From Bugula neritina (lineage: Eukaryota; Animalia; Bryozoa), in contig OZ037770.1 in NCBI GenBank assembly GCA_964035545.1, positions 3,132,662 through 3,196,661 of the forward strand: 64,000 nt of DNA. Direction: 5' to 3'. The notes beneath the pieces are model-generated. The model saw only the letters and a program-made list of their open reading frames with translations. It was not told the origin of the DNA and searched no databases. Made by a program: the position numbers and the translations under genes. Below, one piece after another: positions 9,511 through 42,400 of this stretch (position 1 is the stretch's first letter; each line of letters opens with the position of its first letter).

Positions 9511-9770
9511 AGGGGAGAAAATAAACAGAAAGAGGGGAGAAAATAAACAGGAAGAAGAGAGAAAATAAACAGGAAAAGGAGAGAAAATAAACAGGAAGAG
9601 GAGAGAAAATAAACAAGAAGAAGACAGAAAATAAACAGGAAGAGGGGAGAAAATATACAAGAAGAGGGGAGAAAATATACAAGAAGAAGAGAGAAAATAA
9701 ACAGGAAGAAGAGAGAAAATAAGCAGGAAGAGGAGAGAAAATAAATAGGAAGAGGAGAGAAAGGTGAGAG
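9511..9770. repeat. Purine-rich minisatellite (21-23 bp unit, GAGAAAATAAACAGGAAGA core)
   Basis: About 11 direct tandem copies; explains the F/S/L-rich spurious ORFs at 9391-9815. Confidence 0.9.
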
Positions 9771-11026
9771 AAGAAATGTCAGAATTGAATGAGAAACAGT
9801 TATACTGAGAGTCATATTATAGATGTTGATTTGATAATGATCTTATATTTTATGTGTGTTGTTGACCGTCTCAGCGCTGTGTATAGACTATTATACTGAA
9901 GTTACACTGATTTATATTCTCTACTCTTATGTAATGATAGAGTTTCCCAATAATAATAAAATCAAACTATCAATGACAACTAGCCTTAATTATATATTAA
10001 AACTAGCTAGTACTGAGCATATTCAAGCAAGAATTCTCTAGAATAAATGTGTTTCTAAATTTGCATATTCTTCAATAAAAATAGTGAATACAGCATTAAA
10101 TAAGGGGGGGGGGAGAAAATGATAGCCAATATATGTTTCTGAGTTTATATATTCTGGAATAATGAATCAATGGAAAAGTATAATATTGTAAATAAAACCT
10201 GTTGTCAAATATGAAAATGATACAAAATATACAATAAAATATACTGCAATTTACAATACTATATGTTCTATGTACAAATAGCTACAGCAAAATAATATAC
10301 AGTAATTTACAAAAAGGAGTGAGTAAATAGCAAATAAAGAAATTTGCTACTAAATCACATTATTTCCTGACAATAAAGAATACAAAATTTGAAAAATTCA
10401 CATTAATGAATACAATGCAATGTGGTTTTCACAAACAGAAAAGTATACAAATGTAATATATAAAATATAATATATACAAATATAGAATATACAAAAGTGT
10501 GGACGGTTGCAAAAACTCTTAATTGACCTATATTTGCATGGACTATATGGAGAGTCTATAGTAATGTTTAGGAGTTGTGACCACTTAGCAGTTAGCAGAG
10601 AGAAAAAAACAACCAATAAACTCTGACTAGAAGAAACACTTATATACAAACAAACCAGAGCTAAATATTTTGCGAGGCGAGGAAGTTAGAAAGACCACAA
10701 TATACCCTCTGAGACAGACTGTATACAAGAATACACCTGGTAAATGACCTTTGAACTATGAGTCACTGCGACACTACATCATAGATTTGACCTGAGTAAA
10801 CTGAGTGTATTATTACCATGAGTATAGAAACAGAGAGACTGTAGCTTCTAGAAAATACCAGAATGTTCTAGAGATGAGTCATAGTAGAGAGAGTAGTCTG
10901 AGTTCTGTACAGAGAGTAGTCTGAGTTCTGTACAGAGAGACTAGAGTCTAGTTAATAGGAAGATGAGTAACACACAGAGTGGGGGGTCCTGTATATAAAT
11001 ACTGGTATCTTATATAGAACAGCTTC

Positions 11027-14000
11027 TCAGCTTATAGCATCTGCTTTCAGCTGGTACTCCTGTGCTTTTCCATATTCACCCATTTCCTCATATACAATTC
11101 TGATGTGTTTATAAGAAGTAGCGATGTGTGGATGTGTAGCCTCACTGCCATAGACAGCTAGCCCCATATCTAATGACTTAGTATAGTATTCTAGTGCCTT
11201 GCTATATTCACCCATGCCGCAATACACAAGACCAATATTGTTATATGAAGTAGCAATGTCTGCATGTGTAGCCTCACTGCCATAGACAGCTAGCCTCATA
11301 TCTAATGACTTAGTATGGTATTCTAGTGCCTTGCTATATTCACCCATGTTGTTATACACAAGACCAATATTGCTATATGAAGTAGCAATGTGTGCATGTG
11401 TAGCCTCACTGCCATAGACAGCTAGCTCCATATCTAATGACTTAGTATAGTATTCTAGTGCCTTGCTATATTCACCCATGTTGTTATACACAAGACCAAT
11501 ATTGCTATAAGAAGTAGCAATGCTTGCATGTGTAGCCTCACTGCCATAGACAGCTATGTACATATCTAATGACTTAGTATAGTATTCTAGTGCCTTGCTA
11601 TATTCACCAATGCTGTAATACACAAGACCAATATTGTTATAAGAAGTAGCAATGTCTGCATGTGTAGCCTCACTGCCATAGACAGCTAGCTTCATATCTA
11701 ATGACTTAGTATAGTATTCTAGTGCCTTGCTATATTCACCCATGCTGTAATACACAGTACCAAGCTCACCATAAGCACTAGCTAAGTCTACATGATTTGT
11801 CTTCCCATGTACAGCAATATACATGTCACATGACCTGTTCATATAAAGCAAAGCCTGATCATAAAGACACATATCTCGATACACTCCACCAACTTGGAGA
11901 TAACATGAGGCTATATCAGGATGAGCACCTTGTACCTCTCTACTAGCTCTTTCTATATTCAATTGTCTAGCCTTAGTACCTAAGTCTATAGAAAACTTCC
12001 CCATTTCTCCATGAAGTTGGGCCAGTATTGGAATGTCTTTAATCTCATTAAATATGTTTTTAGTCATTTCTAAAGCCATTGCATGATATTTGAGTGCAAG
12101 CTTTTCTTTTCCCATCTCACTATATACTCTACCATAAGCAGAGTGTATGTCTGCAATGTCTATGTGGGTGGTCTCTGCTGTAGCCTGTGAAATCTTAAGA
12201 GCTGATTTGAGACTTGAAAGGGCTGAGTCATAATCCCCCATAAGGCAGTGAAGGAGCCCCACTTCCACCAGTAGACTAGCTTTTTCATGATTACCTGCTT
12301 CTATGCTATCATATATGTGTCTAGCTGTATGATAATTACTGAGTGCTGCATCATAGTTTGACCTTTTGACTTCCAGAGCTGCCACATCTCTATAACACTG
12401 AGCAACACTGCCATGATGAGTTGTGGTGTACAGGTTCTCTGTCATATACAAAGCTCTGCTATAGAAATGCAATGACATTTCATAGTCTTCAATATTTTCA
12501 TAAATTAGTCCCAACCCTCTCAGTAGTATTGCAACATCTGGGTGATCAACACAGTCAGTGTGGAGCTCTACCAACTCATCAAGGTACTGAGTCAGGTACT
12601 GTATACCTCTCTCATGCTCTCCTTTCTCCGAATGTATTAAAGCTAATGATACTATCAGCTCAATGTAATGGCTATCAAGTCTTTCCTGTTTGTCAACTGA
12701 GTGCAGCCTGTCAAAAACTGTGAGGGCAGAATTGGCCATTTCCTCTGCTTGTATGTAGTTCTTTGTGTTTTTACATGCTTCACTGAGGACTCTGAAAGCT
12801 TGTGCAGTGAGTTCAAACCATCGCTTGTCTTCATCTGGAAGTTCAGAGCTTGTAGACATCTTTTTTACAAACCTGAACAGAGTTTGCCCTTTACTCATGT
12901 TAAACTTGGTCTTTAGAGTAGAGTAAACATCTCCAAGCAGTGAAAATACATTCGTATAGTTGTGAAGTTTGTTAGCACAATCTGTGGCCAAAATCTTCCA
13001 CTTCAACACATCAATTGGAGTTTCTTTAGAATTTTTGGCCAGCCAAGTAAAATATTTCAAAGAGAGCTGGAAATTTTGTGAAGAATATAACAAATAGGCT
13101 GCCAGTTCAATAAGTTGCTGGGAAGTTTTTACTTCCTCTGAGCCACTACTTAACAACTTTGACGTTTCTGATTTGTTTTGGTTGAGAGATTTTTTTACAG
13201 TCTTTGCAAATGAATCAGGTCTCTCAGCAAATATTTCTTCACCACAGTTGGTTCTTATGGTTTTTATTGCCTGTTCATAGGATCCACAGAAGTACTCAGC
13301 TTCAGCTTTTACCATAAAAGATGAACTCTGCACATTTAAATTGCTTACTAAACGCTTCATCACATCAACCTTGTCTGTTGTGTTTAGACTGGTTAGTGAA
13401 ACAAAATTTTCAGCAATGCACAATTTGAAAGGAACAATTGTGTAGATCATCAGGATGAAAATATCAGGCGATAAGCAGTAAACTTTTCTGTTTGATTTTG
13501 CTGCAGGATACAGTGAAAATTGATCTTGCTGAGATTGTAGCTGAATACAAGCTGCTGTCCTTATGTATATAGCTAAAGCTGATACTAAGTTTAGTCTGAA
13601 ACACTGTGCATCATCTATATACCCACATTCTTTCAGTTTCTTATTTACCAACCAAGGTTTTGTTTCAGAAAATCCTAAAAGCAGTCGGAGATGATCAACC
13701 AAAAGTGTTGGGTATCGAAATAATTCGGACTTCACTTTAAGCTGGGTGTTGTCTGGAGGCCCAAAAGACTCAAAACTAGGTTGGAAGTTATATGTATTCA
13801 CATCATTTTCTAGTACTGCTAATCGCTTTTTTATTAGCAATGCGCTCGAGCTTTCTTCTGCTAAGATTTTATGAAAACTTTCTTTTACTGTTTCGTAAAG
13901 AGCATTACCACTTTTATGGGAGTAAACCAACACTGAAGAAGAGAGAATGTCACCAATATCTGCTGTGTCACCAGCAGGTGAACACAACGCTTCCCTATAC

Positions 14001-14900
14001 ACACAGGTTAACTGCTCTGGCATCAGGATCAAGTTCTTAGCACCATCACCTCTTCCAGTAGGGATATTCCCTGCTTTCTTTGATATGCCATCAATGTGAA
14101 ACCCAACAGTCACATCATCATTGTAGGACTTGTCTATCTCAGCAATATCAAAGGTTTTCAAGGGAGATTCTCCCATGTTCCCTATTCTAAAGTAACTATC
14201 AACAGCTAACTTAGTAAAGTAGTCCATGTGACTGTCAGACTCCACAATGAAGGCATATTCTAAGTCAGAGTAAGGAGTGGCTGTACCACGAGCAACAGAA
14301 CCCAATGCAATCACAGCAAAAGAACAAGGATCCTTCAAACCTAACTTACTAAGATTATCAACACTTGACTGCATAATGGACGCACAGACTGAAATAAATC
14401 GGTTACTACATTTTTGACTTAGTTTAAATACAGCATCAGAAAAGGAAGACAGTTGATCCTTTGAAGGGTAACTGTCAAGGTTTAAATACTTTGTATCAAT
14501 AGAGTCAAAGTCATATTTAGTTTCATCTCTGTACTCTCTGAGTAGCTGTAAGTGTTTGGTTGTTTGCTGCTCATGTTCCTCATATGTAAGTGGATGCCTA
14601 CCTTTGTACCAGCTATCTTCTATATCATAGACTTTACGCTTTCTTTCTGCTGTGAATTCTCTGGCAAGACATCTGTTGGCCAACCCATGAGCCTAAGTAC
14701 AATACCACAATATTCGTTATATTCATTATACATGCCTATCACAAACAACTTTGAGACTCAAGTATAGTAAGTATGTACATTAATTAGTCACCTATACACA
14801 CCTTAAGGTAAGGCACCCAGTCACCATTTGAGTCTCTTGCCTCATTCTGGTATTTCTCTGTCAACTCATCCAACTTCTCAATGTCTCTATAGCTCTCCAT
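11027..14900 (-). CDS. Nucleotidyltransferase (DUF294/GlnD/GlnE-like, pol-beta fold) + helical substrate-binding domain + TPR-repeat protein, about 1254 aa
   Basis: Two coding exons: 14900-14802 (MESYRDIEKL...WVPYLK; in-frame TAA two codons upstream of the ATG) and 14692-11027, joined by a 109-bp phase-0 GT-AG intron. NTase signature FAVIALGSVARGTATPYSDLEYAFIV (GS-x-DxE), candidate third acid in GFHIDG, DUF294_C-like helices (KVKSELFRYPTLLVDHL; LKECGYID...LAIYIR), then roughly 12-13 TPRs. Confidence 0.9.
11030..11794 (-). repeat. Coding tandem array of 132-bp (44-aa) TPR units, 6 units with a near-identical core
   Basis: Units start at 11794, 11662, 11530, 11398, 11266 and 11134; consensus HAxIATSYxNIGLVYxxMGEYSKALEYYTKSLDMxLAVYGSEAT. 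Confidence 0.95.
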
Positions 14901-16100
14901 TACTTACTGTCTACAAGATAAGTGAGTAAGTTATTACACATATCTCTGCAAAGAGATACAATGTATTTCAACTTCCTAAGAAAAGGTATTAAATTCAAAA
15001 AGGTAGCAATTATTTTTTCTAGCCTTTATAATAATAGAATAATGTTTAAATTATAAGAAATTCCATATAATTTGGTAAAAGATAAAGCAATTGCTTTCCT
15101 TATACAAGTAACTTGCAAGAAAAACTAACTGGTTACTAGGAAATAAAATAGCAGCAAAATGTGCAGCACAAAGTAAAGTTATCTAAACTCAAACTAAATA
15201 AAGGTCAATGCTGCAATTTTAATAATCTGTTAAAATAGTTTTACATTTGAGTTTTTCTAATTTCTTTTGCTTCAAAGCAATTGCAAAATTCAATTGACTT
15301 ACCTGAGAAAATTTATAATTAGAATAAAATCAGAAACTTACTTCAAATTAATGAAGGAGGATGGTCTATGTCAGCTGAGGTAGAGTCAACTTTGTGACAG
15401 GTGTTAGCAGGTGTGTTGTGGCGCTGTATATATATAGTGGGGCTGTGACAGGTAGACTTCGGAGGTATTGTGCTGATGGCAGGTGCTGACAGGTGTCTTC
15501 TAGTTGGGTGGTGACTGAAATTAGCAGTAGAAATACATATAAATTTATTTTTACAAATCATTTTATAACTCAGTATGCCAACAAGGTAAAAATTTGGTAA
15601 TTAAATTAACAAACAAGAAGGTCATACTTTCATAGCAGCTACCAGTTACCAGTAGGTCTACAGAATTATTATTAGCGACACCAGCAACCAAAGAATATGT
15701 TAATTCAAACTGACACAATATTCATCAGAGAAATGAGTTCGAGGACTGCATATATTTTCAAGACTACATTTTCTTAACCAGTATAAACTCAACACATGCA
15801 GTATAATATGATAGTAGGTAGAAATGTTTAATTTCAGGGAAACATTTGCTTAACAAATATTATCCAATTATAGCTTTAATTGCTGAAACAAATAGCTTGT
15901 TGACAATGTCTACATATATACAAGTGTTTTTAGTCGTAACCATAGCAACTATCAGTCTACTATCAAGGTTAAATATAACAACCACAGAAAGCTTTGTAAA
16001 CTTCAAAGAGTAAATTATGTAACTGGATGCTGTACTGCTTATGTGAATGGGGAATATAGAATAGAAACTGCACTTAGTTGGATGTAGAAACAAAGGCTTA

Positions 16101-16432
16101 GCCTAGGGCCACACGGTGCGTATTTTCTCATGCGAAAATTGAAATCACAAGTAGCAAAGGTGTCCACTGTGCGCGTTGAGAAAACATTAGCACTTGTCGC
16201 TCAGCATTTTCAACGCAAGTGCGAATCGTCACCTAATTGGCTGGTAGTTATTCAGCGAGCCCAATTTCTTTATTTTAGTGCTACATTCCAGTAAATTGCG
16301 TTTTATTGAAAACGAGTGCGACTTAAAAATGAAAGCTTTATTTATCACGCATCACTGACGCTACAGTGGACACCTTTGCTACTTGTGATTTCAATTTTCG
16401 CATGCGAAAATACGCGCCGTGTGGCCCTAGGC
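16101..16432. mobile_element. PIF/Harbinger-type MITE, 332 bp
   Basis: Near-perfect TIRs of about 70 bp (gcctagggccacacgg...gtgtccactgt / acagtggacac...gtggccctaggc) flanked on both sides by TTA. Confidence 0.9.
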
Positions 16433-17782
16433 TTAGAGTAGTAAAAGTCTGCTCTATAAAATATTCCTCACCGGAGATGTAGGCCAGTAAAGTATAATGA
16501 AAGACATTGACTGTAAAGAAGGTAGAAATTTTAGTCAGCTAATAAGAAAATAACATTTCAAAATGTAAAAAAAAAAAACTTACTTTTAGGTAATTAAAGA
16601 CATGTGTTGGCTTTATGCAGTGGCAGACTTTGTGACAGGTGATAGCAGGTGGGTTCTATTGTGGTAGTGTCTAGAAAGAAAACTCACATTTATATTCTAT
16701 ATGATTATAACTATAAAAGTAATGAAGATCTCAAACCTGAGGTAGAAATGATAAAAGTCAAGAGAACTGCAACACTGCATAGCTTTTCTAAAACAACTGC
16801 TACATGTAAAACTTTCTGTAATCTTCATTCTGATGAGTTAATTTTTTTTAATAAAGAATACATACATATATTTTAGGTTATTACTAGAGCTGCATAAAAA
16901 AATAGAGCAATAGGAATACATGGTGCTTAACATACACACCTTCCTAAAGCAACAAATTTATATTTTAACAGAGTTACTATTTAATTTAAACTTCTTATAC
17001 TGATGCAGCAACTGTAAAACCCTTTAGGTAATTGTCTATGTCAGGGAAGAGAAATATTGTATGGGTGTCAAAAAGCCTCTGTAAAATTTTATTATTAGTT
17101 ATTAGAAACTTCACTTGTAGGAGAAACTTACTTCTAGGTAGTTGATATGGGAATTGTCTATGTTAGTTTATAGGTGAGGCTCAACTTTGTGGCAGGTGAT
17201 AGCAGGTGTGTTGTGTTGCTGTATTTATATGGTGAGGCTGTGACAGGCAGACTTTGGTAGTAAGGTAGTGATGGCAGGTGTCAACATGAGTCTTCTGCTT
17301 GAATGGTCTCTATAAAAATGTATCAACATTTTGTATTTTTTACTATAAAAACTGAAATATCTCAGCTAAGCCTATGCCTCAGTTATGCCCACACCATTCC
17401 TCATAATATTGGGCTTTATTTTGATCCTGATGCTTGTAAACAAAACCATAGCAACAATCAGTAACTAATGTATTGATTATTTACATGCTTATTAACATGA
17501 GCACAGATATTATCAGAAATATATTTGCTCAACATTTAAAAAGTTAGGAGCAAATAGTGCATGTCTTTAAGATTATTACATGATAGTCAGTGAAAATGTT
17601 TAGCTTCAGAGAGACACTTGCTGAGCAAACTTTCTGCTGAAAATTCTGATTGTAGAAGGAAGTAACATGACTACAATGTCTACATAATGTCGAATAAAAT
17701 GTATCACTGCCTTATATTTTTATTATAAAAACCTGAATCTCTCAGCTAGGCCTTTGCCTCAGCTATGCCCATTGGAAGGTAA

Positions 17783-17852
17783 ACATTGCACAGGTAATAA
17801 TGGCACAGGTAATAATGGCACAGGTAATAATGGCACAGGTAATAATGGCACA
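17783..17852. repeat. 15-bp tandem repeat GGCACAGGTAATAAT (terminal fragment of a MITE family)
   Basis: About 4 copies; the same motif forms the subterminal repeats of the element at 20298-20545. Confidence 0.7.
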
Positions 17853-20297
17853 TGAGACAATCTATAGTCTAAACTGAGGTTATTTTAAAGTCAGAAGATG
17901 TAGCTGCATATATAAACTTATATTATATGTATATTATAACTAGAATAGTAAATATATACATCTACATATGAGATAAATAACATGACTGTAGGTGATACAT
18001 CTATCAAACTAACAGTGAAGAAAGGTGTTAAATAAAGAGTTTACTAATAGCTCACTCTATACACTATGAAAGGCATTAATTCACTTTAATTATCACCTAA
18101 TAATGCTTTTCAATTAACAAATAACTTCTCTAACTACTCACAAAATAATGGTTCAAGTTAGTTAAAACAGAACTGTGTACTGTGTAGACTACAGTATGTA
18201 ATAATTTACTAAATTTATGCCAGTTTAAATGCCTTCTTTAAAAAAAATGTAGTGACTCAACTTTTTCAAATCAATTTTTTAAAAAGTAAAAAGGTTTCAA
18301 CGCTACAAACCCTCATAAAACTATGATTCACTTTAATCAAATACTTAATATTGGTGAGGAATTTTTGAAGGTTTTAGATTATTTTATGCCATTAAAAAAG
18401 TTTCATTTTCAATTATAGGTATTTGAGGAGGATATTTAGTATTATCTCAGGTAGTGTGACAGGTGATAGCAGGTGTGTTGTGATGCTGTATCTATATGGT
18501 GAGGCTGTGACAGGCAGACTTTGGTAGTATTGTGCTGATGACAGGTGATAGCAAGTGTCTTCTACTCGGATGGTGACCGGAATTAGCAACAGAGTTGCAT
18601 AAAAATAATATTGAAATATTTTTGGAAAGTCAACAAATTAGAAATGTGTGATAATTAAAACAAATAATTTTGTTTTTATTTCTCTTTTACTTCTAAAAAC
18701 TGGGAGCAGCAGCAAAGTTCCATAAAAGGTTTAAGTCTAAAAATAATAATCGTGCAACTTTATGATTTGTTTGCTAACAAATATAACTGTGGGAATGTAA
18801 CACATTAACAGCCAATAGTTTAGCAAATATTATTGAGTAGAAATCTACATGAGATGCTGTATACTGAAATAATGTTTTGAGTCACAAGATGTAGAGAAAG
18901 TTATGTAGAATAATATCTTTCTAGGTTTATCTAATAAAAATATTATCTTTGTATGTAACTCAAATTTAAATCTATATTACAGAAATTACAATTGATCTAT
19001 AAATACAGATATAATAAATATAAACTAAATTAGAGATTAGCATGTGACACAGCACCCACTATGTGACAGGTGTTAGCAGGTGTGTGCTGGTGTCAGAATA
19101 CTGCTTATCACATATTTGAGAGGCTTTAAAATTGTATTGAAGAGGATAAATTCTGAAAAACGCCCACTTTATCTCAACTCTAGTGTTTATATCAACTGAT
19201 AAGGAATCTGAATATTCTGCTAAGTAGTAGAAATACTACACCTTCTCTATAAGATAATATCTCATAATAAAATAATAAAAACAATATAAGCTATAGTGGA
19301 TAAATGTATAACATGTTGCATACTTAATCAAAAGACTAGACAAATGTGTGTTGAACGTAGGTTGCCTGCAGCACCTTTTCATTATTTACTTTGTATATGA
19401 GCTTTTTCTGTGCCTGAAAATAGCTGCAGGGTGGAGCATTATATTATAACTGTTTTTATAAATAACTTCTCTAACAAAATAATAGTTCAAGTTAGTTACG
19501 ACAGAGTATAAATTAATTTTGTATGCCAGTTTAAATGCCTTCTTAAAACTAATGTAGTGAGTCACCTTTTTCAGCTCGATTTTTTCTCAGGGGCAAAATA
19601 TTTTAACAAACCCTCATAAATCTATGCTTCATTCTAATTAAATATTCAACTTTGGTGAGAAATTTTTGAAGGTTATGGTTATGAAAATTTTCACATAGAA
19701 AATCTATTTACAGGTCTTTGATGAGGATATCAAATATCAGGTCAGGTAGTGTTAGCAGGTGTTCGCAGGTGTATTGTGGTGCTGTATATATATGGTGAGG
19801 GTGTGACAGGCAGGACCTTGTAGTAATGTGCTGATGGTAGGTGCTGACAGGTGTCTTCTATTTGGGTGGTGTCTAAAATTGGCAGTACAACTACATACAG
19901 TAGCTTTCACAAAAATACTATATGTAATAGCTAACAAACTCACACTTTCATATATTACATGCAAAATTAAATCTATATCAACAAGTTGACTATAAACAAT
20001 ACAGTTGCTTTAATAAAGTTATAATATATATGCTGACAACATATAACTTGAATTATAGTTGTGTAGGATGAAGATATGAACATATGAGACAACATTTGTG
20101 ACAGGTGTTAGCAGGTGTGTGTTGGCAGGTATTAGCAGGTGTGTGTTGGCAGGTTTTAGCAGGTGTGTGTTGGCAGCTGAATAATGTCTATGAACTCTAT
20201 AAGAGTTTATCTCATGTCATCATAAAACTTTAATACAAAGTCTAAACTCTGGTAACACCCACTTTATCTCAACTTTAATATTTATATTAACTGATAA

Positions 20298-20545
20298 AGG
20301 TGTCCGGCAAAAGTGGCACAGGTAACAATATCACAAGTAAAATTGAACAGCAAAAATACCAGAGGTAGTAATAGCACAGGTAACGATGGTAAAATAGGTG
20401 ATAACATGGATAAATTGGCAGGTTTTCAAGTTAGAGTTTTGGGACTTCGGGTTTGAACAAATTAAATATGAGTGTGCTAGTTTTACTAACTTTTCCTTTT
20501 CCATTTGTGCCATTATACTACATGTGCCATTATTACCTAAAATCC
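20298..20545. mobile_element. Degenerate MITE-like insertion with GGCACAGGTAA subterminal repeats
   Basis: Motif is direct at the left end and inverted (tgtgccattattacct) at the right end; absent at the paralogous position near 19200. Confidence 0.5.
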
Positions 20546-23500
20546 TAAATAATATAAATTAATATTTATATGGTATTAATTCTAAAGTATTAAGTGATGA
20601 TAAAAATATTTTAAATTTATTGATTAGCCATGCGGATAACAAAATATTCAACTCGACACACACTACAACTCTGGAGGATATGAGTATCTAATCTAAGGCA
20701 AATTGATTTCAGTTATAACTGTTTGCAAATTTTTGGTATTAGAAATTTTACTTTTAAGAAAAAGAAACTCACTTTTAGAAAGTATAAATGGTGACTTTTT
20801 GTTGGCAGTGAGAGGCTGTGTGACAGGTGATAGAAGGCTTGTTGTGTTGCTTCAACAGGCGTTTGTATGGTGAGGCTGTGACAGGCAGTCTTTTGTAGAA
20901 ATGGGTGTATGGCAGGTGCTAGCAGGTGTCTTCTGCTTGGGTGGTGGGGTCTAAAAATAGCAGCAAGAGTGTGCATATAGCATTGTTTAAATCACAACAA
21001 GTTTTGGTGACGCCCACTTCATCTCAACTCTAATATTTATGTTTACTGTTAAGAATCAAAGGAGACATGAAATGGTGTTAAAAGTAGGTCAAATTTAGTT
21101 ATATATATGTTTTCTATTATCATATTTTTTTAAAAATCTTGACTGGTTTATAAAACACTAAGAGAAGGATGCAAGTGAAAAGATTTCCATTAAAAGGTTT
21201 TTCAAACATCCCCACTGATCGAATAAATATTGAAAAATGGTTATTTCCTTTCGACGTCACTTTTGTAAAAAGAATTACCTGGTTTCCAACATAATAAAAG
21301 TAGTTAAATGTGCTTTCATACATCTTCACTGAATTAAAATGCAAAGTTTTTGTTTAAATAGGTTGACAACTCAGGAAACTAGTGAGATATAATTAAATAT
21401 ATGCAATATATTTGATAAATACTTCAGTGACTTCAATATAAAAAATGATATCCGCTATGTTATTTTGAGAAATTATTCCTAGATCATAAATTCACTTCTA
21501 AAATATTTAACTTACTTTTACGTAACTGAAGATGAGCGTTTATTTTTGGCAGTGAGTAACTTTGTGACAGGTGCTAGCAGGTGGGTTTTGTTGGGGTAGT
21601 GTCTAAATAATAGATAATGTATTAATGTTTAGACTACAAAGTAATTGAAAAATATTCTAATATTAATTAGGTTTAGTGACTACAAATATAATTAAAATAT
21701 TTGAGAAAAAGAATTACAAATCTAGAGGATATGCATATCTTATCAAAGACAAAATGATTTTATTGACAACTGTATGCATCTTAAACTTTGTAGTATCAAA
21801 AGATTCGCCTTAAGAAAGAGAAACTTACTTTTAGAAAGTTTAAATAGTGGCTTTTTATTGGCAGTGAGAGGCTGTGTGACAGGTGATGGCAGGTGTGTTG
21901 TGTTGCTTCAACAAGCGTTTGTATGGTGAGGCTGTGACAGGCAGTCTTTTGTAGAAATGGGTGTATGGCAGGTGCTAGCAGGTGTCTTCTACTTGAGTGG
22001 TGTGACCTAGAAATAGCAGCAAAAGTTTACATTTAGTCTTGTTTAAAATAACACTGTGAGCTGTTAGTCTAACAACTATAGAAATATATTGTATTTGATA
22101 TTAGGTAAAATAAAAACCAATCGGTGAAAAGTTGTTCAAAAACCTGCATATTACAGATTTTTGAAAGGTGTTGACAAGTGTGTGCAATTTAATTTTGAAT
22201 AACGCTGAAAAGTTATGTAAGAGATTTCATTTTCACCACAAAATTTGACAAGAAAATTTATTTTTGGTACCGTTCTCTTCAACTCAACTCTAAAATTGAT
22301 ATTTACTGATAAGTATCAAATAAGACATAAAATGGTGTTAAAAAGTAGGTCAATATCAGTTCTATATAGATGTTTTCTTTCAAACATAAAATAACCTGTC
22401 CATTAAAATTCTTTTTAAACATCTTCAATAGATTGAAACTCACAAAATTAATTTTAATTAGTTGACAACTGAGTGAACTAGTAAATGTAATAAACATGAT
22501 AAATACTTTTTACTCATCTTAGTATAAAATAATAACCATTATATTATTTTAAAATTAACAGCCAATAGTTTAGCAAATATGATTGAGTAGAAATCTACAT
22601 GAGATGCTGTATACTGAAATAATGTTTTGAGTCACAAGATGTAGAGGAAGTTATGTAAAATAATGTCTTTCTAGGTTTATCTAATAAAAATATTATCTTT
22701 GTATGTAACTCAAATTTAAATCTATATTACAGAAATTATAATTAATCTATAAATACAGATATAATAAATATAAACTAGATGGAGAGATTAGCATGTGACA
22801 CAGCACCCACTTTGTGACAGGTGTTAGCAGGTGTGTGCTGGTGTCAGAATACTGCTTATCACATAATTATTTGAGAGGTGCATATGCAATAAACATAATA
22901 AATATTTTACTCATCTTAGTATAAAATAATAGCCATATTATTTTGAAACTATTATTAGATGGAAACTCCAGTTTTAAAAGAGATAATTTACCTTTATGTA
23001 ACTGACGGTGTGTTTATTTTAGGCAGTGAGTGACTTCGTGACAGGTGCTAGCAGGTGAGTTCTGTTGTGGTAGTGTCTAAATGAACAAATAATGAATAAA
23101 AATAAAATAATGCTTAAGTTCTTTAGTGTTTTGGTTAAAGAAATAACTATACAATTTTAGAATGCAATGGAATTTTCAAAAGCATATTTGGTTTTATAAA
23201 TGTATTTCCTTTTAACAGGCACTGAGTTAAATTTTTAAACTAAAATTCCTCCCTACAAGGTGAAAATAAAAGATAATATAAATTGTTGTGAAATATTGGC
23301 ATTATATAAGTTAATAGAAATTGTGATTGCATAAGCTATATTAGAAACTTTACTAAGAAAAGACAGAAACGTACTTGTAGGTATAGTTGAAGAGGATTGT
23401 CTATGTCAGCCGATGTCGTGATCAACTTTGTGGCAGGTGCTAGCAGGTGTGTTGTGTTGCTGTACTTGTATGGTGAGGCTGTGACAGGCAGGATCTGGTA

Positions 23501-24393
23501 GTAATGTGCTGATGGCAGGTGTTAGCAGGTGTCTTTTGCTTGGATGGTGCCGAAAGTAGCAGCAGAAATACACACAGTTATTTTAAAATCAAGTTATGAA
23601 TTATTTGTCAAAAAAGACATTATATCAAATTACCTAACAAGTAGTTTTAATGCCAACAGAAAAAATTTACTTATAAATTCACACTGCAAAGTATTAGAAA
23701 TGTATCATATGTATGCTTAGTTGAACAGTGGATAATAAAACTATTATCAATCAAATAATATTTGAGTAGAAAGTTGCGGAGTAAAATGTTAGTTAATACA
23801 GTGAATATAATTAGACAGAGCTGGGTATAGTAGATATTTACTTACCAACTTTATGTCAGGTTAAACTCTATCTCTATATAACAGACAGTGTGTTCATCTC
23901 CTCAACTTTGAGTTATTTCTCTGTCAGCACAATAACAGGAAAGGAAAAACAAAATTTAAATAAATTATTTTGTACCATTATACTATATCTACACGGCTAA
24001 CTGTAATACAAATCATTAATTAATTTTCAACAAAATATATAATACAAAACAATATAAAGAAAATTTGTCATCAGAAAAATTAAAAAAAACTCAAAACATT
24101 GACTAACCTGTAGGTAAATGACTCAGTGTGTTGTGTAGTGACAGACTATGTGATATGTGTTAGCAGGTGTGTGTTGGTGTTTGACCAATGCTTATCACCA
24201 CTATGAAGGTTATATACTTGTCATCATGTAATTTTGATAAGAAAGTATTTAATTAATGGCACCGACTTTATCTCAACTCTAATATTTATATTTACTTAAG
24301 AATGGGAATTCAAATAATATGGCTAACTAACCAATTTACACTTAGTTGGGAAGAATTTGACTGAAATCACAGAAATTATCTGGGAAATTTATT

Positions 24394-30918: not shown

Positions 30919-33650
30919 TTAGTCTGCTAGTGTTTCTCCCGTGCGTAGTTCACGGGCTGTTCTAATGAGGAAGCTATGCAGGAAATTATTAGTATTACAG
31001 GATATTGAATTAAAAGAGTTACTGTCCCCAATATTGGTATTACGGAGAGATTTCATGGAGTTAAGAGTGTTAATTAGGTTAGGGAAGAATGCTTCATGCT
31101 GCAACACTTTGAAGAATAGCGTGAATCTGTGTTCTTGTCTGGATTTATTTAAAGCCTTTAAGTTTAACTCCGCCTTGGATTCGGTCACTGAGACATCCCA
31201 GCCTTTTAAGTTTTTTACAAAACGTACTGCCTTGTTTTGAACTTTCTCTAGATTGTTGCTTAGCATGAGATGTGCAGGATCCCAAATTTCGCAGGCATAC
31301 TCTAGAAGCGGTCTACACAGGGTAGTGTATGCTATGAGCTTAACTTTAACTGGAGCATCATAGAGTACATTTTTGATTAATCCTAAAATACGCATTGCTT
31401 TATTGACTACTGAGTTTATGTGATAATCCCACTTTAGATCATGTACCAAATAGATTCCTAGGTATTTTACACAGCTACTTTGTACTAATTGTTCGTTGCT
31501 CAAATAATAAGTGTGCGTTATAGGCTTAGGGCTTTTATCAAACACAATGATGTTGCTTTTTGTTGCATTGAATTTCATGGAGTTTTTAATACTCCAGTTG
31601 TGTAGAGCGTTAAGGTCATTTTGCAAATTTTCCTTGTCTTCGTCTTTAGATATATGCGTATATAGTATAGTGTCATCCGCGAAGAGCCTTACAGTGCAGT
31701 ATTTTACACATTTAGTGATGTCATTAATGAAAAGTGTGAAAAGTGCAGGCCCTAAAACGCTACCTTGAGGGACACCTGAAGTAACAGCTACAGCATCAGA
31801 TTTGTGGCCTTTAATCACCACTCTCTGAAAACGACTGGTTAGAAACGAGGATATCCATTTTACTAAAAGAGGATTTACTTTGTACTCAATAAGTTTCTGA
31901 ATCAACAGATGATGGGGAACTAAATCAAAGGCCTTAGAGAAATCTAGCACTGCCGCATGTGTAGCCATTCCATTGTCCATATTACTCAATATGTCATGTG
32001 TTAGGCAGGCCAATTGAGTTGTGCAAGACAGGTGACTTCTAAAACCATGCTGGTTTATGGACAGGATATCATTCAATTTGTTTTGCATAAGGTGAAGTAT
32101 AATGTGCTCCATCATTTTACAGACTATTGATGTTAAGGATATTGGTCTATAGTTAGAGGGCAGCTCACGATTTCCTTGTTTGAATATTGGGGTGACATGA
32201 GCCAGCTTCCACTCTGATGGAAGTGTACCTGTTGTTAATGTATAGTTGTAGATGGAAGCTAATAGGGAAGAAATAATTTCAGGGGAGAGCAGTAGCTTTT
32301 GTTTGCTAATAGAGTCTGGCCCTGAAGCTTTACCATTTTTGAGAGACTTAATCAATTTTAACACACCTTCAGAAGTTACTAATATGTTATCTGCATCAGT
32401 TGGAGCCGGAGCTTCTGGGAGCACACATGCTGGTGTAAAAACACTGTGAAAATACAAGTTCAAAGTATTTGCAATGTCAGATAAATCATTAGAGCTGGTC
32501 TTTTCACTAATTTGAATGCTTTGAATACTGTTATTGTTGCCTTTAATTTCTTTAACATATCTGTAAAAAGGTTTCGAGTCTCCATTTGCCAATGGGTAGT
32601 ATAACTTTTCACACATGAAGTCTTTTTTGAGTATTTTAAATAGTTTTTTGTTTTCACGCCTTAGTTTTTTGTATTTGTCAAATAAAACAGAATCACCTGT
32701 GAGCTTGTATCGTGAGTAAAGTTTTCTTTGCTTGTTGCAAGCTTTTTGAGCATCTTTATTAAACCAAACAGGTTGAAAATGTTTTCTAGGTTTAAATTGC
32801 TTTTTAGGTACATGGTCAGTTATTGCCGAATGTAATCCATTTCTAAATGTAGACCAAACAGTATCAATGGGCTGTATATCGTTTATTAGAGAGTTCACTT
32901 CTGAGAGCAAGGCTGCCATTGAGGAATCAAAACCGTTTCTATTTATTTTGTGATACACAAAAGTATAACTATCTTCTACACTTTCTTTAAACTTTTGGGG
33001 TGCTTCTATTGAGCATTCAATCATAAAGTGATCACTGACACCTGGTTGGATTACATTTAAGTCGCAAATTAAATGTTTAGAATTAGTGCAAAGAAGGTCA
33101 AGTATATTGCCAGCTATATGAGTTGGCTCATTAACAATTTGATCCATGTCTAATTCCGATAACAAATCTATGAAGTCATTGTAAAAAGATCTCCAACTGT
33201 TAGAGAAAGTGAAGTCATTCCAATTGATGCCAGGTAAATTAAAATCGCCAGTTAGAACTATTGTTGACCCTGGAAAAAGTTTTTTGATTTTTGACATGTA
33301 ATCTACAAGTGGTTTAATGTTGTATGTTGAAGGCGGTCTGTAGTATGTTACCAAAATATAAGGAGCTACGTTAGATTCAAAATTAAACTTGATTGCTGTT
33401 ATTTCTGCTTCAGATGGTATATCTATTGGAGAATGTGAGATTTGCGAATTAACAGCTATTAGTACACCCCCTCCATATTCATTCCTATCTTTTCTGTAAA
33501 CCAGTTTGTTATTTGGATGGAAGATTTGAGCATTAGCATAGGATGGGTTTAAATGAGTTTCAGTGATAGACATCACATCGTAGTCAGAAGCTATAGCTTG
33601 TAATTCAGCAATTTTACCTTTGATTGATCTTGCATTGATGCTAATTAATC
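30919..33650 (-). CDS. LINE ORF2: apurinic endonuclease + reverse transcriptase, uninterrupted
   Basis: APE motifs ISINARS, ITET, YRPP, GDFN, SDH; RT motifs NYRPISL, DFSKAFD, GVPQGSVLGP, LFADD, KYLG. The NARS motif lies upstream of the first ATG. Confidence 0.95.
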
Positions 33651-39467: not shown

Positions 39468-42400
39468 TGTAACTTATAATTATAATATATCGACAGCCCC
39501 AAGCTGTCACCGTGACCTCCAAACCGCTCCTTAGTCACTCCAATCTCCACCGTGATCTGCCCAGTAAATCACCGTATTCACCCAGAATACAATGACAAGA
39601 ATGCTGACTTTGCTAAACTCTCTAATAGATATAAATTTTGTCAGTCGAACACTGTTGCGCGATAGAAAAGGGTCTTTTGTTTCGCAGCGCAACACGAGGC
39701 AAAATCTTTGACTCTTGCTGTGTACCTAAGCACTCTATCTTGCTACACCGTTAACGGCATTGGCATACTTACAGCCCACATCTCCTTTAGCTTCTTGCAA
39801 AGCTACTAGGGGGACGCCATGACCTCCGGCCAGTCAACATAATGATTCAAGTACGCAGGTCGCCGCCGCACACGTTGCGGCCGTCCATGATGGATCAGCG
39901 GCACATCTGCATTTTCGCTCTCCTCAGCATTGGCTCCAACCTGTTCGGCGGGGCGTTCTGGACACCTTACACCTTACATCGGGTTGGGCTAGGTCTTCCC
40001 AAATGGCATACTGATCCGCATTGGCCTCCTCGTCAGGCTTCTCAATCAGCACTAACGGCAGATCTCCTGGAGGTCCAGCATAAGGCATTTGCTGATCATC
40101 AACATGAGCAGCCCGTCGACACAGCCATATCAAAGACGCAAGGTCCGTTCGTAATCTGAACGTGCGTCCATAAAGGTATGGTCTAAAGTGTTTCACCGCC
40201 TTGACTACTGCCAGGAGCTCTCTCCTGGTGGTACAGTAGTTCTTCTCAGGCGCCGACAGAGCCTTACTTTAGTAAGCTACCACCACCTCGCAGTCATCTT
40301 AGACCTGAGACAGCACAGCCCCCACATTATGGTTACTGGCATCAGTATCCAAAATGTACTCCTTCGCCGGATCAGGGTATGCCAAGATGGCCGCCTCTAC
40401 CAAACGATCCTTGAGGTGGTCAAATGCCTGCTGTTCTGTATGCGTCTACTGCCATCGCACCCCTTTTGCTGTCAGCTGGTTTAGTGGCTGCACAATTCCT
40501 GCAAAGTCTGGTATGTACTGACCGCAATTCAGGGAGGTCGACAGGGACGGCCCAGTCCCTCACAGCCCGTACTTTCTCGGGGTCGGTGGCGACCCCGTCT
40601 CGACCAACTACATGGCCCAGGTACTTAACCTCGCGTTGCAGTAATGCACACTTCGAGGGCTTGAGCTTCAGGCCCGCAGCTCGGAGTCTGCCGAACACCT
40701 CCCTGAGTCGACTGACATGTGTGTCGAAGTCGGGGGAGATGACGATGACATCATCGAGATAGATGAGCAAGGTCTTCCAGTGCAGTCCACTCAGGACCTG
40801 CTCCATGAGTCGCTGGAAGGTGGCTGGTGCGGACGTAAGTCCGAATGGCAACACCTTCCATTTCCAGAGCCCATCTCGCGTAATAAACGCGGCCTTGTCT
40901 TGTGCATCAGGACTCAGAGGCACCTGCCAATACCTGCTTAGCAAGTCCAACGTACTGAAGAACTTGCTACCAGCTAAGGCATCTAGCGACTCATCGATCC
41001 TAGAAAGAGGGTAAGCGTCCTGGATGGTCACGCTGTTCAATTTGCGATAATCTACGCAAAACATCCAGCTCCCATCCTTTTTCCGAACCAGGACAACTAG
41101 AGAGCTCCAAGCACCATGGGCTGGCTCAATCAGGTCCCGGTTCAGAAGGTCTTGCTCCTGTCGGCTCACTCCCTTTTCCTTCTCAGGACCTAACCGGCGG
41201 GTCGGCTGCCTGATAGGCACCATCCCAGCCGCCAGGGGTATCTTATGACAGACAGCCTTCGCTATGCCCATGTCATGATCGCCGCAACTGAACACATCCT
41301 TGTACTCAGAGAGTAGCTGCGCCACTACCAAGTGTTCTCGTTTACTCTCACAGCCATCACAGGCATCTCCGTATAAATCTACCAAGTGTTCAGGCACCGG
41401 CCTCCTGCCATCCGTAGTGAGTACCCGTCGAGCCTTGTCCGCTGTTTCCAGGGCTGGCCCGACATCCTCCTCCTGTATGGAGTGGAATTTTCCCACTAGT
41501 GACCCAGCCAGAAATTCTACCGGCTCCGTGAAAAGATTCACACACTGGACCAGGAACTCCCCCAGCTCATCCAGTCTATTCAGACAGTTAGCGAGCCAGA
41601 CGCCCCCAGCGCACCTTCCAACACTCCTAAATTTGAGATTTTCCTACAGTTCACTCTGCAGTGAACTGTAGCCCTAGAGCGCCCAGGTACAGTACAGCGC
41701 TGTACCACCTGCACCTCCCCCACCAAGAGCCGGCCAAATCAGTTGACACAGGCCAGCTCACGCCCGACCATCACTACCGCCGACTTATTAAAGTCAATAT
41801 GGCACCTGCGTCGCTTCAGAAATGGCATGCCCAAGATGGCATACTCCTTGAGTTGACTGACGATGAAGGTCTCGCTGATCATCTGATCACGGACTCTACC
41901 AGTCAGCTCTATCACACCATAAAAAGGAATACATGACCCGTCCGCCAACGTGCCGTGTTCCCCTTCATATGGCTCTAGGTTAGCCCGGTTCCTAGCACTG
42001 AATGTGTCAAACAGACGCCAGTTCAGAAGATTTGTGGTACACCCAGTATCTAATAGGAAGGTGGCAGCTTTTCCGGCAAGTTTACCGGGGAGGAAATAAC
42101 TGCTCCCATATGACTGGGCGCTCACTGAGCGATTCGTCTCTGGAGGTGCATGGAGTTGGGAATGCATCTGTGCTTTTCGGTTGCGAGGGGGTTGTCGACG
42201 TTTCGTGGGCAAACAGGTTACATCTCGGTCTTGCTCACACACAGACGGCCTAGTGAATGCTCGGTCTTGCGCTCGTGTGGGCAACCGAAGGAAATCCCTG
42301 TCTCGCTCCCACTCGTCGTGCACTCCTTCATCAGGCAAACCTTCAAAGCGGTTTTTGAGTGCCCAAGCCGAAGGTTTTGGCGGGCCTTGCGGCCTGCTAA

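Follow-up and report, generated by a model that had tools for sequence, protein, structure and literature searches.

A GlnE/DrrA-type nucleotidyltransferase module fused to a variable TPR array: a candidate NMPylating recognition family encoded in a bryozoan genome

Bacterial proteins of the DUF294 family typically carry cNMP-binding and CBS domains in addition to their putative nucleotidyltransferase domain, and we know of no member that has been characterised. In RRNPP regulators, among them Rap and PlcR, a TPR region controls an N-terminal effector domain without the involvement of an NTPase. The enzymes with the ATase fold that a 2025 review of AMPylation covers (GlnE and SidM/DrrA) are all bacterial, and those that it gives for eukaryotes are FICD and SelO (PMC12409994). 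The three characterised enzymes of the GlnE/GlnD/DrrA fold group all modify protein tyrosines, and FICD/HYPE, a metazoan TPR-Fic AMPylase, pairs TPRs with a protein-AMPylating domain (PMC12409994). In the Neochlamydia NEX2 family, an F-box and sometimes an OTU domain are followed by DUF294 and then TPRs, and the family has undergone lineage-specific expansions (Domman et al. 2014, PMC4209131). No paper describing an animal DUF294-TPR or DrrA-like family was found in the searchable literature, where the searches yielded only a HEPN survey (PMC3710099), the NEX2 paper and general AMPylation reviews.

The 64-kb bryozoan window (the whole stretch of DNA that was analysed) contains a minus-strand gene with two coding exons and an intact frame. 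Coding exon 1 (14802–14900, minus strand) consists of an ATG and 32 further codons (33 in all), the final codon AAG being followed by a GT donor; the intron (14693–14801, minus strand) is of the GT..AG type, 109 nt long and in phase 0; and coding exon 2 (11027–14692, minus strand) is a single block of 3666 bases comprising 1221 codons and a TGA (11029–11027). The preliminary description had noted a long uninterrupted exon between 11027 and 14900, which proved to be this 3.67-kb frame (14692–11027), and its upper limit, 14900, is the ATG of exon 1. The exon 2 product served as the query for the Pfam and homology searches, and the exon 1 product was aligned separately. Exon 1 is kept in close paralogs, and when its product was aligned to the N-termini annotated for Watersipora and Bugula proteins, M1, L13, G26, W28 and Y31 proved invariant. 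The acceptor (TAG, followed after the splice site by GC.CATGG) is identical across nine paralogs, and the long frames of the paralogs, down to about 25–30% identity, all begin at an [AS]H[GA] residue directly after a stop codon. Transcription and splicing of the gene are predicted from this conservation and from the annotated Watersipora N-termini. A pyrimidine tract and an AG lie directly upstream of the exon 1 ATG, which suggests that an additional non-coding 5′ exon precedes exon 1. A divergent tail of about 300 residues, found in two neighbouring paralogs (L021 and L022), is absent from this gene, and no homologous further tail exon was detected elsewhere within the window when the tail was used as the query. 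The gene sits on a 16-Mb contig with a G+C content similar to that of its flanks, and the surrounding region is rich in retroelements. A Bugula neritina protein (P0023) matched the genome at 88% at most, so that the genome is taken as that of a relative of Bugula.

The preliminary description had left it to be checked whether the gene is single-copy; it is not. The bryozoan genome contained 67 matches, about 53 of which run without interruption for 850 codons or more, with copies arranged in tandem clusters. The family comprises about 50–60 copies, nine contigs carry about 60 of them, and DUF294 scored above its cut-off at 40 places in the genome. Among animals, relatives were found in Watersipora, amphioxus and an annelid, and among bacteria in endosymbionts of amoebae that belong to the Rickettsiales and Chlamydiae. 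The databases give only automatic names, for example 'Protein-PII uridylyltransferase N-terminal domain-containing protein' or 'TTC28-like'; the Jidaibacter proteins matched the family profile at E values of about 1e-78 to 1e-86. The phylogenetic tree was built without chlamydial sequences, and it was not rooted on GlnE, GlnD or DrrA, because their identity to the family is merely 9–17% and such a root would be unreliable. The sampled bryozoan copies fell into one clade (SH-aLRT 100), with subfamilies common to the Watersipora lineage, and one branch split the named animal sequences from the named bacterial ones. Judged from the alignments and the tree, the sampled bryozoan copies thus form one old clade with a common intron, which lends no support to contamination or to a recent horizontal acquisition. 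A bacterial contaminant, or a segment recently transferred from a bacterium, would accord with the closest described architecture being that of Neochlamydia (NEX2), with the close relatives in Rickettsiales endosymbionts and with nearly the whole coding sequence lying in a single exon. Nevertheless, we regard this explanation as highly improbable, given the large contig and its matching G+C, the spliceosomal intron at a position conserved family-wide, the presence of about 60 copies over nine contigs, the single clade whose subfamilies are common to two bryozoan lineages, and the one branch that parts the animal from the bacterial rows. For the same reasons (large contig, multiple copies, common intron and single clade) the concern about contamination raised earlier could be set aside. 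The earlier argument that led from a near-intronless structure to horizontal acquisition or to retroposition fails for a recent event, since the intron recurs in paralogs down to about 25–30% identity, and the Watersipora-shared subfamilies and the one animal/bacterial branch contradict it as well.

Exon-2 residues 1–438 (13379–14692, minus strand) are predicted to form a GlnE/DrrA-type adenylyltransferase-like module on the basis of an AF2 model, VIA-align, Foldseek and Pfam. The module is laid out as N-terminal helices, a pol-beta nucleotidyltransferase core and a helical domain of DUF294_C/GlnE type, and the AF2 model of these residues had a pLDDT of 89.9 and a pTM of 0.91. The top VIA-align match was the Legionella DrrA AMPylation domain (6yx5_B, Z 26.5, 319/339 residues, rmsd 4.0), and the E. 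coli GlnE domains scored Z 21.8 (1v4a) and Z 20.9 (3k7d). Foldseek matches of the module model had E values of 1.9e-6 to 7.6e-5 (the two best 1.9e-6 and 3.1e-6) at probability 1.00. When the family profile was searched against the PDB, DrrA again came first (E 2.5e-5), and the catalytic loops of the two were aligned. Pfam DUF294 (PF03445) was matched at 27.5 bits against a cut-off of 21, over residues 87–160 and profile positions 26–91 of 138, and the cut-off was likewise exceeded in 34 of 36 relatives (best E 9.8e-10). Sequence and modelled fold both place the N-terminal part among the pol-beta-fold nucleotidyltransferases, in the GlnD/GlnE/DUF294/DrrA group, which bears out the nucleotidyltransferase proposed from the letters. 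The catalytic motif, G131-S132-x10-D143-x-E145 (D143-L-E145), lies at 14258–14302 (minus strand), exactly where the preliminary description had placed it approximately. Across the alignment of 36 family members, G131, S132 and D143 never vary and E145 is kept in at least 90%, and the motif was present in 36 of the 37 homologues from the first homologue search. The HMM alignment puts it over the G-x11-D-x-D of DrrA with the same spacing, the last residue being Glu across the family and Asp in DrrA and GlnE. D201 (14090–14092, minus strand), which is at least 90% conserved and lies within a conserved G-F-x-I-D-G, is a candidate third metal-binding carboxylate. The dN/dS of the enzyme module is 0.13–0.21, even between close paralogs, and purifying selection acts on it.

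The DUF294_C-like helical domain claimed earlier is borne out by structure and by the amphioxus relatives, but not by Pfam in this protein. Model residues 282–438 superpose on the helical half of DrrA (3l0i_C, Z 10.5), and the amphioxus relatives exceed the DUF294_C cut-off (49 and 34.7 bits against 22.5). The exon 2 product itself gave no match to DUF294_C (PF10335) at E<=0.1, and only one of 36 relatives matched it, at E 0.0017.

Two chemistries had been put forward for the module, namely protein NMPylation and synthesis of a nucleotide messenger. As the sole strong structural matches are the protein-modifying DrrA and GlnE, NMPylation is favoured over messenger synthesis. The alternative that the nucleotidyltransferase makes a diffusible cyclic or linear oligonucleotide signal once the TPRs bind a ligand, in the manner of cGAS, CD-NTases and OAS, draws on the same superfamily fold and metal-binding motif and on a sensor-plus-nucleotidyltransferase logic that is common in immunity. 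We consider it quite unlikely, because the core is followed by a helical domain of GlnE/DrrA type and the searches turned up no signalling nucleotidyltransferase: no Mab-21 or OAS match was found by Pfam in the exon 2 product or its relatives, which matched DUF294 and SidM_N instead, and no Mab21, OAS, CD-NTase or cGAS chain appeared among the Foldseek matches at E<=0.001 or the VIA-align rows at Z>=8, a list that re-ranks the top Foldseek chains only, so that more distant fold similarity lies outside its reach. Alternatively, the module might work in reverse as a de-NMPylase, which is what the GlnE N-terminal domain does, or its substrate might be a small molecule or the end of a nucleic acid, as for aminoglycoside nucleotidyltransferases and MNT antitoxins. 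In favour of this, the match of the AMP-removing GlnE domain (1v4a) is about equal to that of the adenylylating one (3k7d), and the D-x-E form of the motif also occurs in kanamycin nucleotidyltransferase; however, the writer DrrA is clearly the best match, no partner writer enzyme is evident, and a TPR groove fits peptide ligands better than small molecules, so that we hold this alternative to be unlikely.

The rest of the exon 2 product is rich in TPRs, with Pfam matches to TPR_12 (E 1.6e-82 over nine stretches), TPR_10 (E 7.8e-44) and TPR_1 (E 1.6e-43). Residues 441–958 (11819–13372, minus strand) form an irregular helical and TPR region, as indicated by Pfam TPR/KLC-like matches, a PDB profile search and VIA-align Z scores of about 8–10, and its dN/dS is 0.23–0.37. 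It is followed by a homogenised array of 44-residue TPR units (residues 959–1221; 11030–11818, minus strand), with 5–6 units in this copy and hypervariable groove positions. TRF detected a 132-nt period at 11109–11763 (5.0 copies, 93% matches), and the model shows paired helices at a 44-residue period. The number of units ranges from 5 to about 15 among paralogs, and the gene at 11027–14900 has the shortest repeat array within its cluster. Neither a NACHT or NB-ARC match by Pfam nor a Walker A (P-loop) pattern was found in the exon 2 product. The earlier claims of a long variable TPR array fused to the nucleotidyltransferase and of a missing NACHT/NB-ARC P-loop were both upheld, the array differing between copies in unit number and at groove positions.

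Variation within the array is concentrated at a few positions. Among 40 units of 44 residues from five paralogs that are about 93% identical, the units are nearly identical save at eight columns, numbers 11, 14, 17, 21, 24, 25, 36 and 43 of the unit. These variable columns had a dN of 0.52 against a dS of 0.16 (dN/dS 3.3), values to be read with the columns having been picked for their variability and with gene conversion between repeats violating the model. The remaining columns gave a dN/dS of 0.44, and synonymous divergence was similar in variable and scaffold columns. Five of the eight are TPR positions 2, 5, 9, 12 and 13, which are the ligand-contact positions of the concave face (PMC1261162); the hypergeometric chance of all five contact positions falling within 8 of 44 columns is about 5e-5. 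Six of the eight lie on helix A, spaced i, i+3, i+6/7. On the one hand, the family could have an ordinary endogenous regulatory or scaffolding role, with the repeat variability reflecting relaxed constraint, unequal crossing-over and gene conversion, and this copy may be a decaying, unexpressed duplicate; its short array, the retroelement-rich setting and the fact that concerted evolution homogenises repeats whatever their function are consistent with this. On the other hand, the 1221-codon frame and the catalytic motif are both intact, the enzyme module is constrained among close paralogs too, and variation is limited to groove-facing positions on a nearly invariant scaffold with like synonymous divergence, whereas relaxed constraint would not be expected to pick out TPR positions 2, 5, 9, 12 and 13. 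We therefore consider an ordinary role rather unlikely.

The best reading, in which our confidence is about evenly balanced, is a TPR-guided protein-NMPylating enzyme in a conflict or recognition role. The product would be a cytosolic animal protein, its N-terminus being without signal-like features, with a GlnE/DrrA-type nucleotidyltransferase in the first ~440 residues and a TPR solenoid in the ~780 that follow. The groove of the solenoid would bind a protein or peptide, and its specificity would depend on a small number of hypervariable positions, which change from unit to unit and from paralog to paralog. What it binds could be the substrate itself or a signal that activates the enzyme. 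In the next step, the enzyme module would move an NMP from an NTP, by analogy AMP taken from ATP, to a hydroxyl side chain of the target protein, with the transfer chemistry of GlnE, GlnD and DrrA and without an NTPase switch. Catalysis, the nucleotide used, the target, the coupling of the TPRs to catalysis and the biological role are all elements that we infer. That the family is large, clustered and diversifying points to a conflict or recognition role, which would be microbial defence or colony allorecognition; as bryozoans are colonial and symbiont-bearing, readouts exist for both. Two observations count against NMPylation, namely the second carboxylate being Glu instead of the Asp of GlnE and DrrA, and the equally good match of the AMP-removing GlnE domain; the shortest array of the cluster and the missing tail of the two neighbours count against the best reading for this copy. 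More broadly, and only tentatively, bryozoans and apparently amphioxus and some annelids might possess cytosolic recognition proteins without an NTPase switch, in which the hypervariable TPR groove recognises a non-self or altered-self protein and the DrrA-like domain directly NMPylates that protein or a signalling target; we think this possible, though doubtful as a whole.

If the recognition and NMPylation reading is true, no earlier case of eukaryotes using the GlnE/DrrA ATase fold endogenously would precede it. Related nucleotidyltransferase-TPR effectors in intracellular Rickettsiales and Chlamydiae would mirror it and would suggest that hosts and endosymbionts have long been engaged in an exchange or arms race. 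With some 50–60 animal-encoded enzymes of the DrrA/GlnE fold, eukaryotes would have a third class of AMPylation-type writers. An enzyme joined to a TPR groove that diversifies at ligand-contact positions would exemplify a direct sensor-enzyme architecture that does without a STAND NTPase. Recombinant protein and labelled NTPs would allow the NMPylation proposal to be tested directly.

Among known systems, the ATase domain of Legionella pneumophila DrrA/SidM is the most similar, being the top match both in structure and in PDB sequence searches and having the same order of nucleotidyltransferase core and helical domain. However, its identity is 15–17%, its second carboxylate is Asp instead of Glu, and DrrA is a secreted bacterial effector in which a Rab GEF and a PI4P-binding domain come next, whereas the animal gene continues into TPRs. 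E. coli GlnE and GlnD belong to the same fold group and have the same G-x11-D-x-[DE] type of motif, but their identity is 9–15%; GlnE has two tandem nucleotidyltransferase modules and a regulatory domain, GlnD has HD and ACT domains, and each is a single-copy housekeeping protein that regulates nitrogen metabolism, in contrast to the diversifying bryozoan family. FICD/HYPE offers a functional analogy for TPR-guided AMPylation in animals, although its Fic catalytic fold is unrelated to the pol-beta nucleotidyltransferase and it is membrane-anchored and single-copy with only two TPRs. STAND/NLR-like NACHT-TPR proteins likewise fuse a variable TPR solenoid for ligands to an effector part, but do so with the NACHT/NB-ARC module that the bryozoan protein lacks. 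Rap and PlcR gave generic TPR structural matches (Z about 8), and their similarity is no greater than that of other TPR proteins. The bryozoan protein scores above the family cut-off for the bacterial DUF294 putative nucleotidyltransferases, but their cNMP-binding and CBS domains had no Pfam match in it and DUF294_C was undetected in this copy. NEX2 and the Jidaibacter/Midichloriaceae nucleotidyltransferase-TPR proteins share the succession of a DUF294-type nucleotidyltransferase and C-terminal TPRs, as well as large lineage-specific expansions. They are bacterial, are presumed to act as effectors in amoebae and usually carry an N-terminal F-box, whereas no Pfam match to F-box or OTU was found in the exon 2 product, exon 1 encodes merely 33 residues, and the bryozoan gene is encoded by an animal and spliced.

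The gene, which lies on the minus strand, comprises two coding exons around a short intron. Its long open frame (14692-11027; 3666 bases, 1221 codons and TGA) has no in-frame ATG in its start region, and its first residues, A-H-G-L-A-N, directly follow a stop codon. The acceptor TAG/GC.CATGG, preceded by a pyrimidine-rich tract in the alignment, is invariant in nine paralogs of the same genome, and upstream of it lies a short conserved exon (14900-14802, minus strand; 33 codons) with an ATG start and the end AAG/GTGTGT. The product of this exon, which was only aligned, while exon 2 was searched separately, aligns to the annotated N-termini of Watersipora and Bugula family members, M1, L13, G26, W28 and Y31 being invariant; in those annotated proteins the A-H-G motif directly follows the exon-1-like N-terminus. 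Acceptor conservation, the conserved ATG exon and the aligned N-termini therefore define coding exon 1 (14802-14900), a 109-nt GT-AG intron (14693-14801) and coding exon 2 (11027-14692), both exons being in phase 0, so that the coordinates 11027-14900 of the preliminary description bracket the gene exactly. The ATG is immediately preceded by a pyrimidine tract and an AG, which suggests that the gene has one or more further 5' exons that are non-coding.

Residues 1-438 of the exon-2 product, on whose numbering all residues are given, are a complete GlnE/DrrA-type module, with a nucleotidyltransferase (NTase) core and a helical domain, as the sequence and fold matches indicate. Pfam DUF294 was matched at residues 87-160 (27.5 bits versus a cut-off of 21), and SidM_N and NTP_transf_2 more weakly. 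Among the 36 members of the family alignment (same-genome paralogs at 25% identity or more, and proteins from Watersipora and from metagenomes), 34 matched DUF294 and 20 SidM_N; G131, S132, T139, P140, S142 and D143 were invariant, and E145 and D201 were at least 90% conserved. G131 to E145 correspond to nt 14302-14258, the very place where the NTase motif had been located. The best PDB-sequence match of the family profile was Legionella DrrA (E 2.5e-5), whose G-x11-D-x-D catalytic loop aligned residue for residue. The AlphaFold2 model of residues 1-600, built on the family alignment, was confident (pLDDT 89.9, pTM 0.91), and its only Foldseek matches with E <0.001 were DrrA (6yx5_B), the GlnE N-terminal domain (1v4a) and the GlnE adenylylation domain (3k7d). 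VIA-align superposed model residues 1-438 on 319 of the 339 DrrA residues (6yx5_B; Z 26.5, rmsd 4.0) and gave Z 21.8 for 1v4a and 20.9 for 3k7d, generic TPR rows lying far below (Z 8-10). The HMM and structure searches proposed in the preliminary description thus identify the N-terminal region as a pol-beta-type NTase with DUF294, DrrA and GlnE matches. The suggested DUF294_C-like helical domain holds by structural match, without a Pfam DUF294_C match in this copy; DUF294_C is above the cut-off in amphioxus relatives. The Pfam search of the exon-2 product returned no NACHT, NB-ARC, Fic, F-box, OTU or Mab-21 match, and the absence of a NACHT/NB-ARC P-loop reported earlier is borne out by the lack of a Walker A motif.

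GlnE, GlnD and DrrA attach a nucleoside monophosphate to protein tyrosines on glutamine synthetase, PII and Rab1, respectively (reviewed in PMC12409994). Because all three characterised enzymes of the fold group NMPylate protein tyrosines, we infer protein NMPylation as the most likely activity: the enzyme module would attach the nucleotide moiety to its protein target, and the TPR groove would select the substrate or an activating ligand. Synthesis of a nucleotide messenger is disfavoured, as the fold matches point to GlnE/DrrA instead. Alternatively, the module could be a removing enzyme, given that GlnE's removing and adding domains give nearly equal matches, or could act on a non-protein substrate.

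Irregular TPR-like helices (residues 441-958) follow the putative NMPylating module, and from residue 959 onward 44-residue KLC-like units, recognised by Pfam and TRF, form a tandem repeat (11109-11763; 132-nt period, 93% matches). With four paralogs on contig C6 (2.90-3.15 Mb), the gene forms a cluster whose five members are ~93% identical in the enzyme module; their exon-2 products of 1221, 1265, 1353, 1644 and 1913 residues differ mainly because the number of units varies from 5 to ~15. Two C-terminal forms occur in the cluster, since the gene and two other paralogs end in a short common C-terminus, and L021 and L022 (C6:2982000-2988000 and 3015500-3022500) carry ~300 residues of divergent TPRs past the homogenised repeats, a tail that the gene lacks and for which no similar exon was found elsewhere in the window.

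Across 40 units from the five cluster genes, 36 of the 44 columns were nearly fixed and eight were variable (entropy of at least 1 bit): 11, 14, 17, 21, 24, 25, 36 and 43, or TPR positions -1, 2, 5, 9, 12, 13, 24 and 31 in the Pfam TPR_1 register. Positions 2, 5, 9, 12 and 13 form the ligand-contacting, specificity-determining concave face (Magliery & Regan 2005, PMC1261162), and the chance of all five falling among eight of 44 columns is ~5e-5 (hypergeometric). A model of the array built from a single sequence places six of the variable columns on helix A, with i, i+3, i+6/7 spacing, and the remaining two on helix B at a distance of seven residues. The variable columns had dN 0.52 versus dS 0.16, and the other columns a dN/dS of 0.44 at similar dS. 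The ratio of 3.3 is suggestive of positive selection rather than proof, because the columns were picked for variability and the repeats exchange sequence; the independent evidence is the match to the known TPR binding face. Because the family is clustered and copy-number-variable, with variability restricted to the groove, its sequences point to a role in conflict or recognition. Under the rival reading, the family would serve ordinary regulation while its repeats turn over neutrally, or this copy would be decaying; dN/dS of the enzyme module among paralogs was 0.13-0.21.

The family is multicopy, as the paralog count envisaged earlier revealed: the 216-Mb genome contained 67 matches to the enzyme module, about 53 of them (counted from the match table) frames that run uninterrupted for 850 codons or more and the others fragments or stop-bearing. 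Contigs C6, C5, C2, C7 and C1 carry tandem clusters of them, and lone copies lie elsewhere. The DUF294 cut-off was exceeded at 40 places. When 1.84 billion representative proteins were searched by profile, 946 matched at E<=1e-30. Named bryozoan relatives were proteins of Watersipora subatra and Bugula neritina, the latter up to 88% identical to genome copies, which makes the host a close relative of Bugula; named non-bryozoan examples were from Branchiostoma, Owenia (with an annotated OTU domain) and the amoeba endosymbiont Candidatus Jidaibacter (giant TPR proteins), with further relatives in other Midichloriaceae and a Chlamydiota cluster listed in the ESM Atlas. Many large relatives (1900-3700 residues) contain two to three complete NTase modules per predicted protein; those of Branchiostoma (P0038, P0039, P0105) and Owenia (P0143) may have arisen by the merging of tandem genes into one model, and those of Jidaibacter (P0135, P0146) may be real. 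Single-exon NTase-TPR genes on 0.5-0.6-Mb contigs (ENA ERZ24900295, ERZ25878362) adjoin Neuralized and zf-MYND exons, eukaryote-type neighbours that place the family in further eukaryotes.

An unrooted maximum-likelihood tree computed from 68 modules gathered every bryozoan sequence into one clade (support 100), within which several subfamilies mix Watersipora and same-genome members, and one branch (support 83) divided the named animal rows from the named Rickettsiales rows, the comparison with endosymbiont NTase-TPR proteins that had been proposed. The intron position is common to all bryozoan subfamilies examined. The G+C of the gene resembles that of its flanks, and retroelements lie nearby: a LINE-type ORF2 of 885 codons (30919-33576, minus strand) with endonuclease/exonuclease/phosphatase and reverse-transcriptase domains, and a 2-kb block (40420-42338, minus strand; G+C 54% versus about 30-38% elsewhere) that is probably left over from an LTR-type retroelement and holds frames for a reverse transcriptase (373 codons) and an aspartyl-protease-like product (199 codons). 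Bacterial contamination, raised as a caveat in the preliminary description, is therefore rejected, and the horizontal acquisition suggested there is not borne out as a recent event, given the shared intron and the single clade with subfamilies shared with Watersipora. Animals and intracellular bacteria may have exchanged the gene long ago, in either direction as far as the unrooted tree shows.

Upstream of the gene, direct repeats are scattered over 15393-24301 at intervals of about 1.1-1.3 kb or longer, including a 152-nt element in five copies (68-83% identity to the reference copy) and several further families of 40-240 nt. A 22-nt tandem repeat (9511-9762; 11.5 copies, 90% matches) lies ~1.3 kb downstream of the stop codon, and a 23-nt repeat (10884-10939; 2.4 copies) lies within the presumed 3' UTR.

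No paper describing the animal family turned up in the literature that could be searched. The enzyme fold and the NTase-TPR architecture are already known; what is new is the host kingdom and the diversifying repeat groove. The present analysis contributes an exon-intron model for the gene, defines its five-gene subcluster with differing numbers of units, places variable columns at TPR positions 2, 5, 9, 12 and 13, shows a single old bryozoan clade in the tree, and connects the family to NEX2 and to Midichloriaceae proteins. The Neochlamydia NEX2 family is built of an F-box, sometimes an OTU, then DUF294 and then TPRs (Domman et al. 2014, PMC4209131); whereas the gene here has no Pfam match to F-box or OTU, it shares with NEX2 the same order of DUF294 followed by TPRs.
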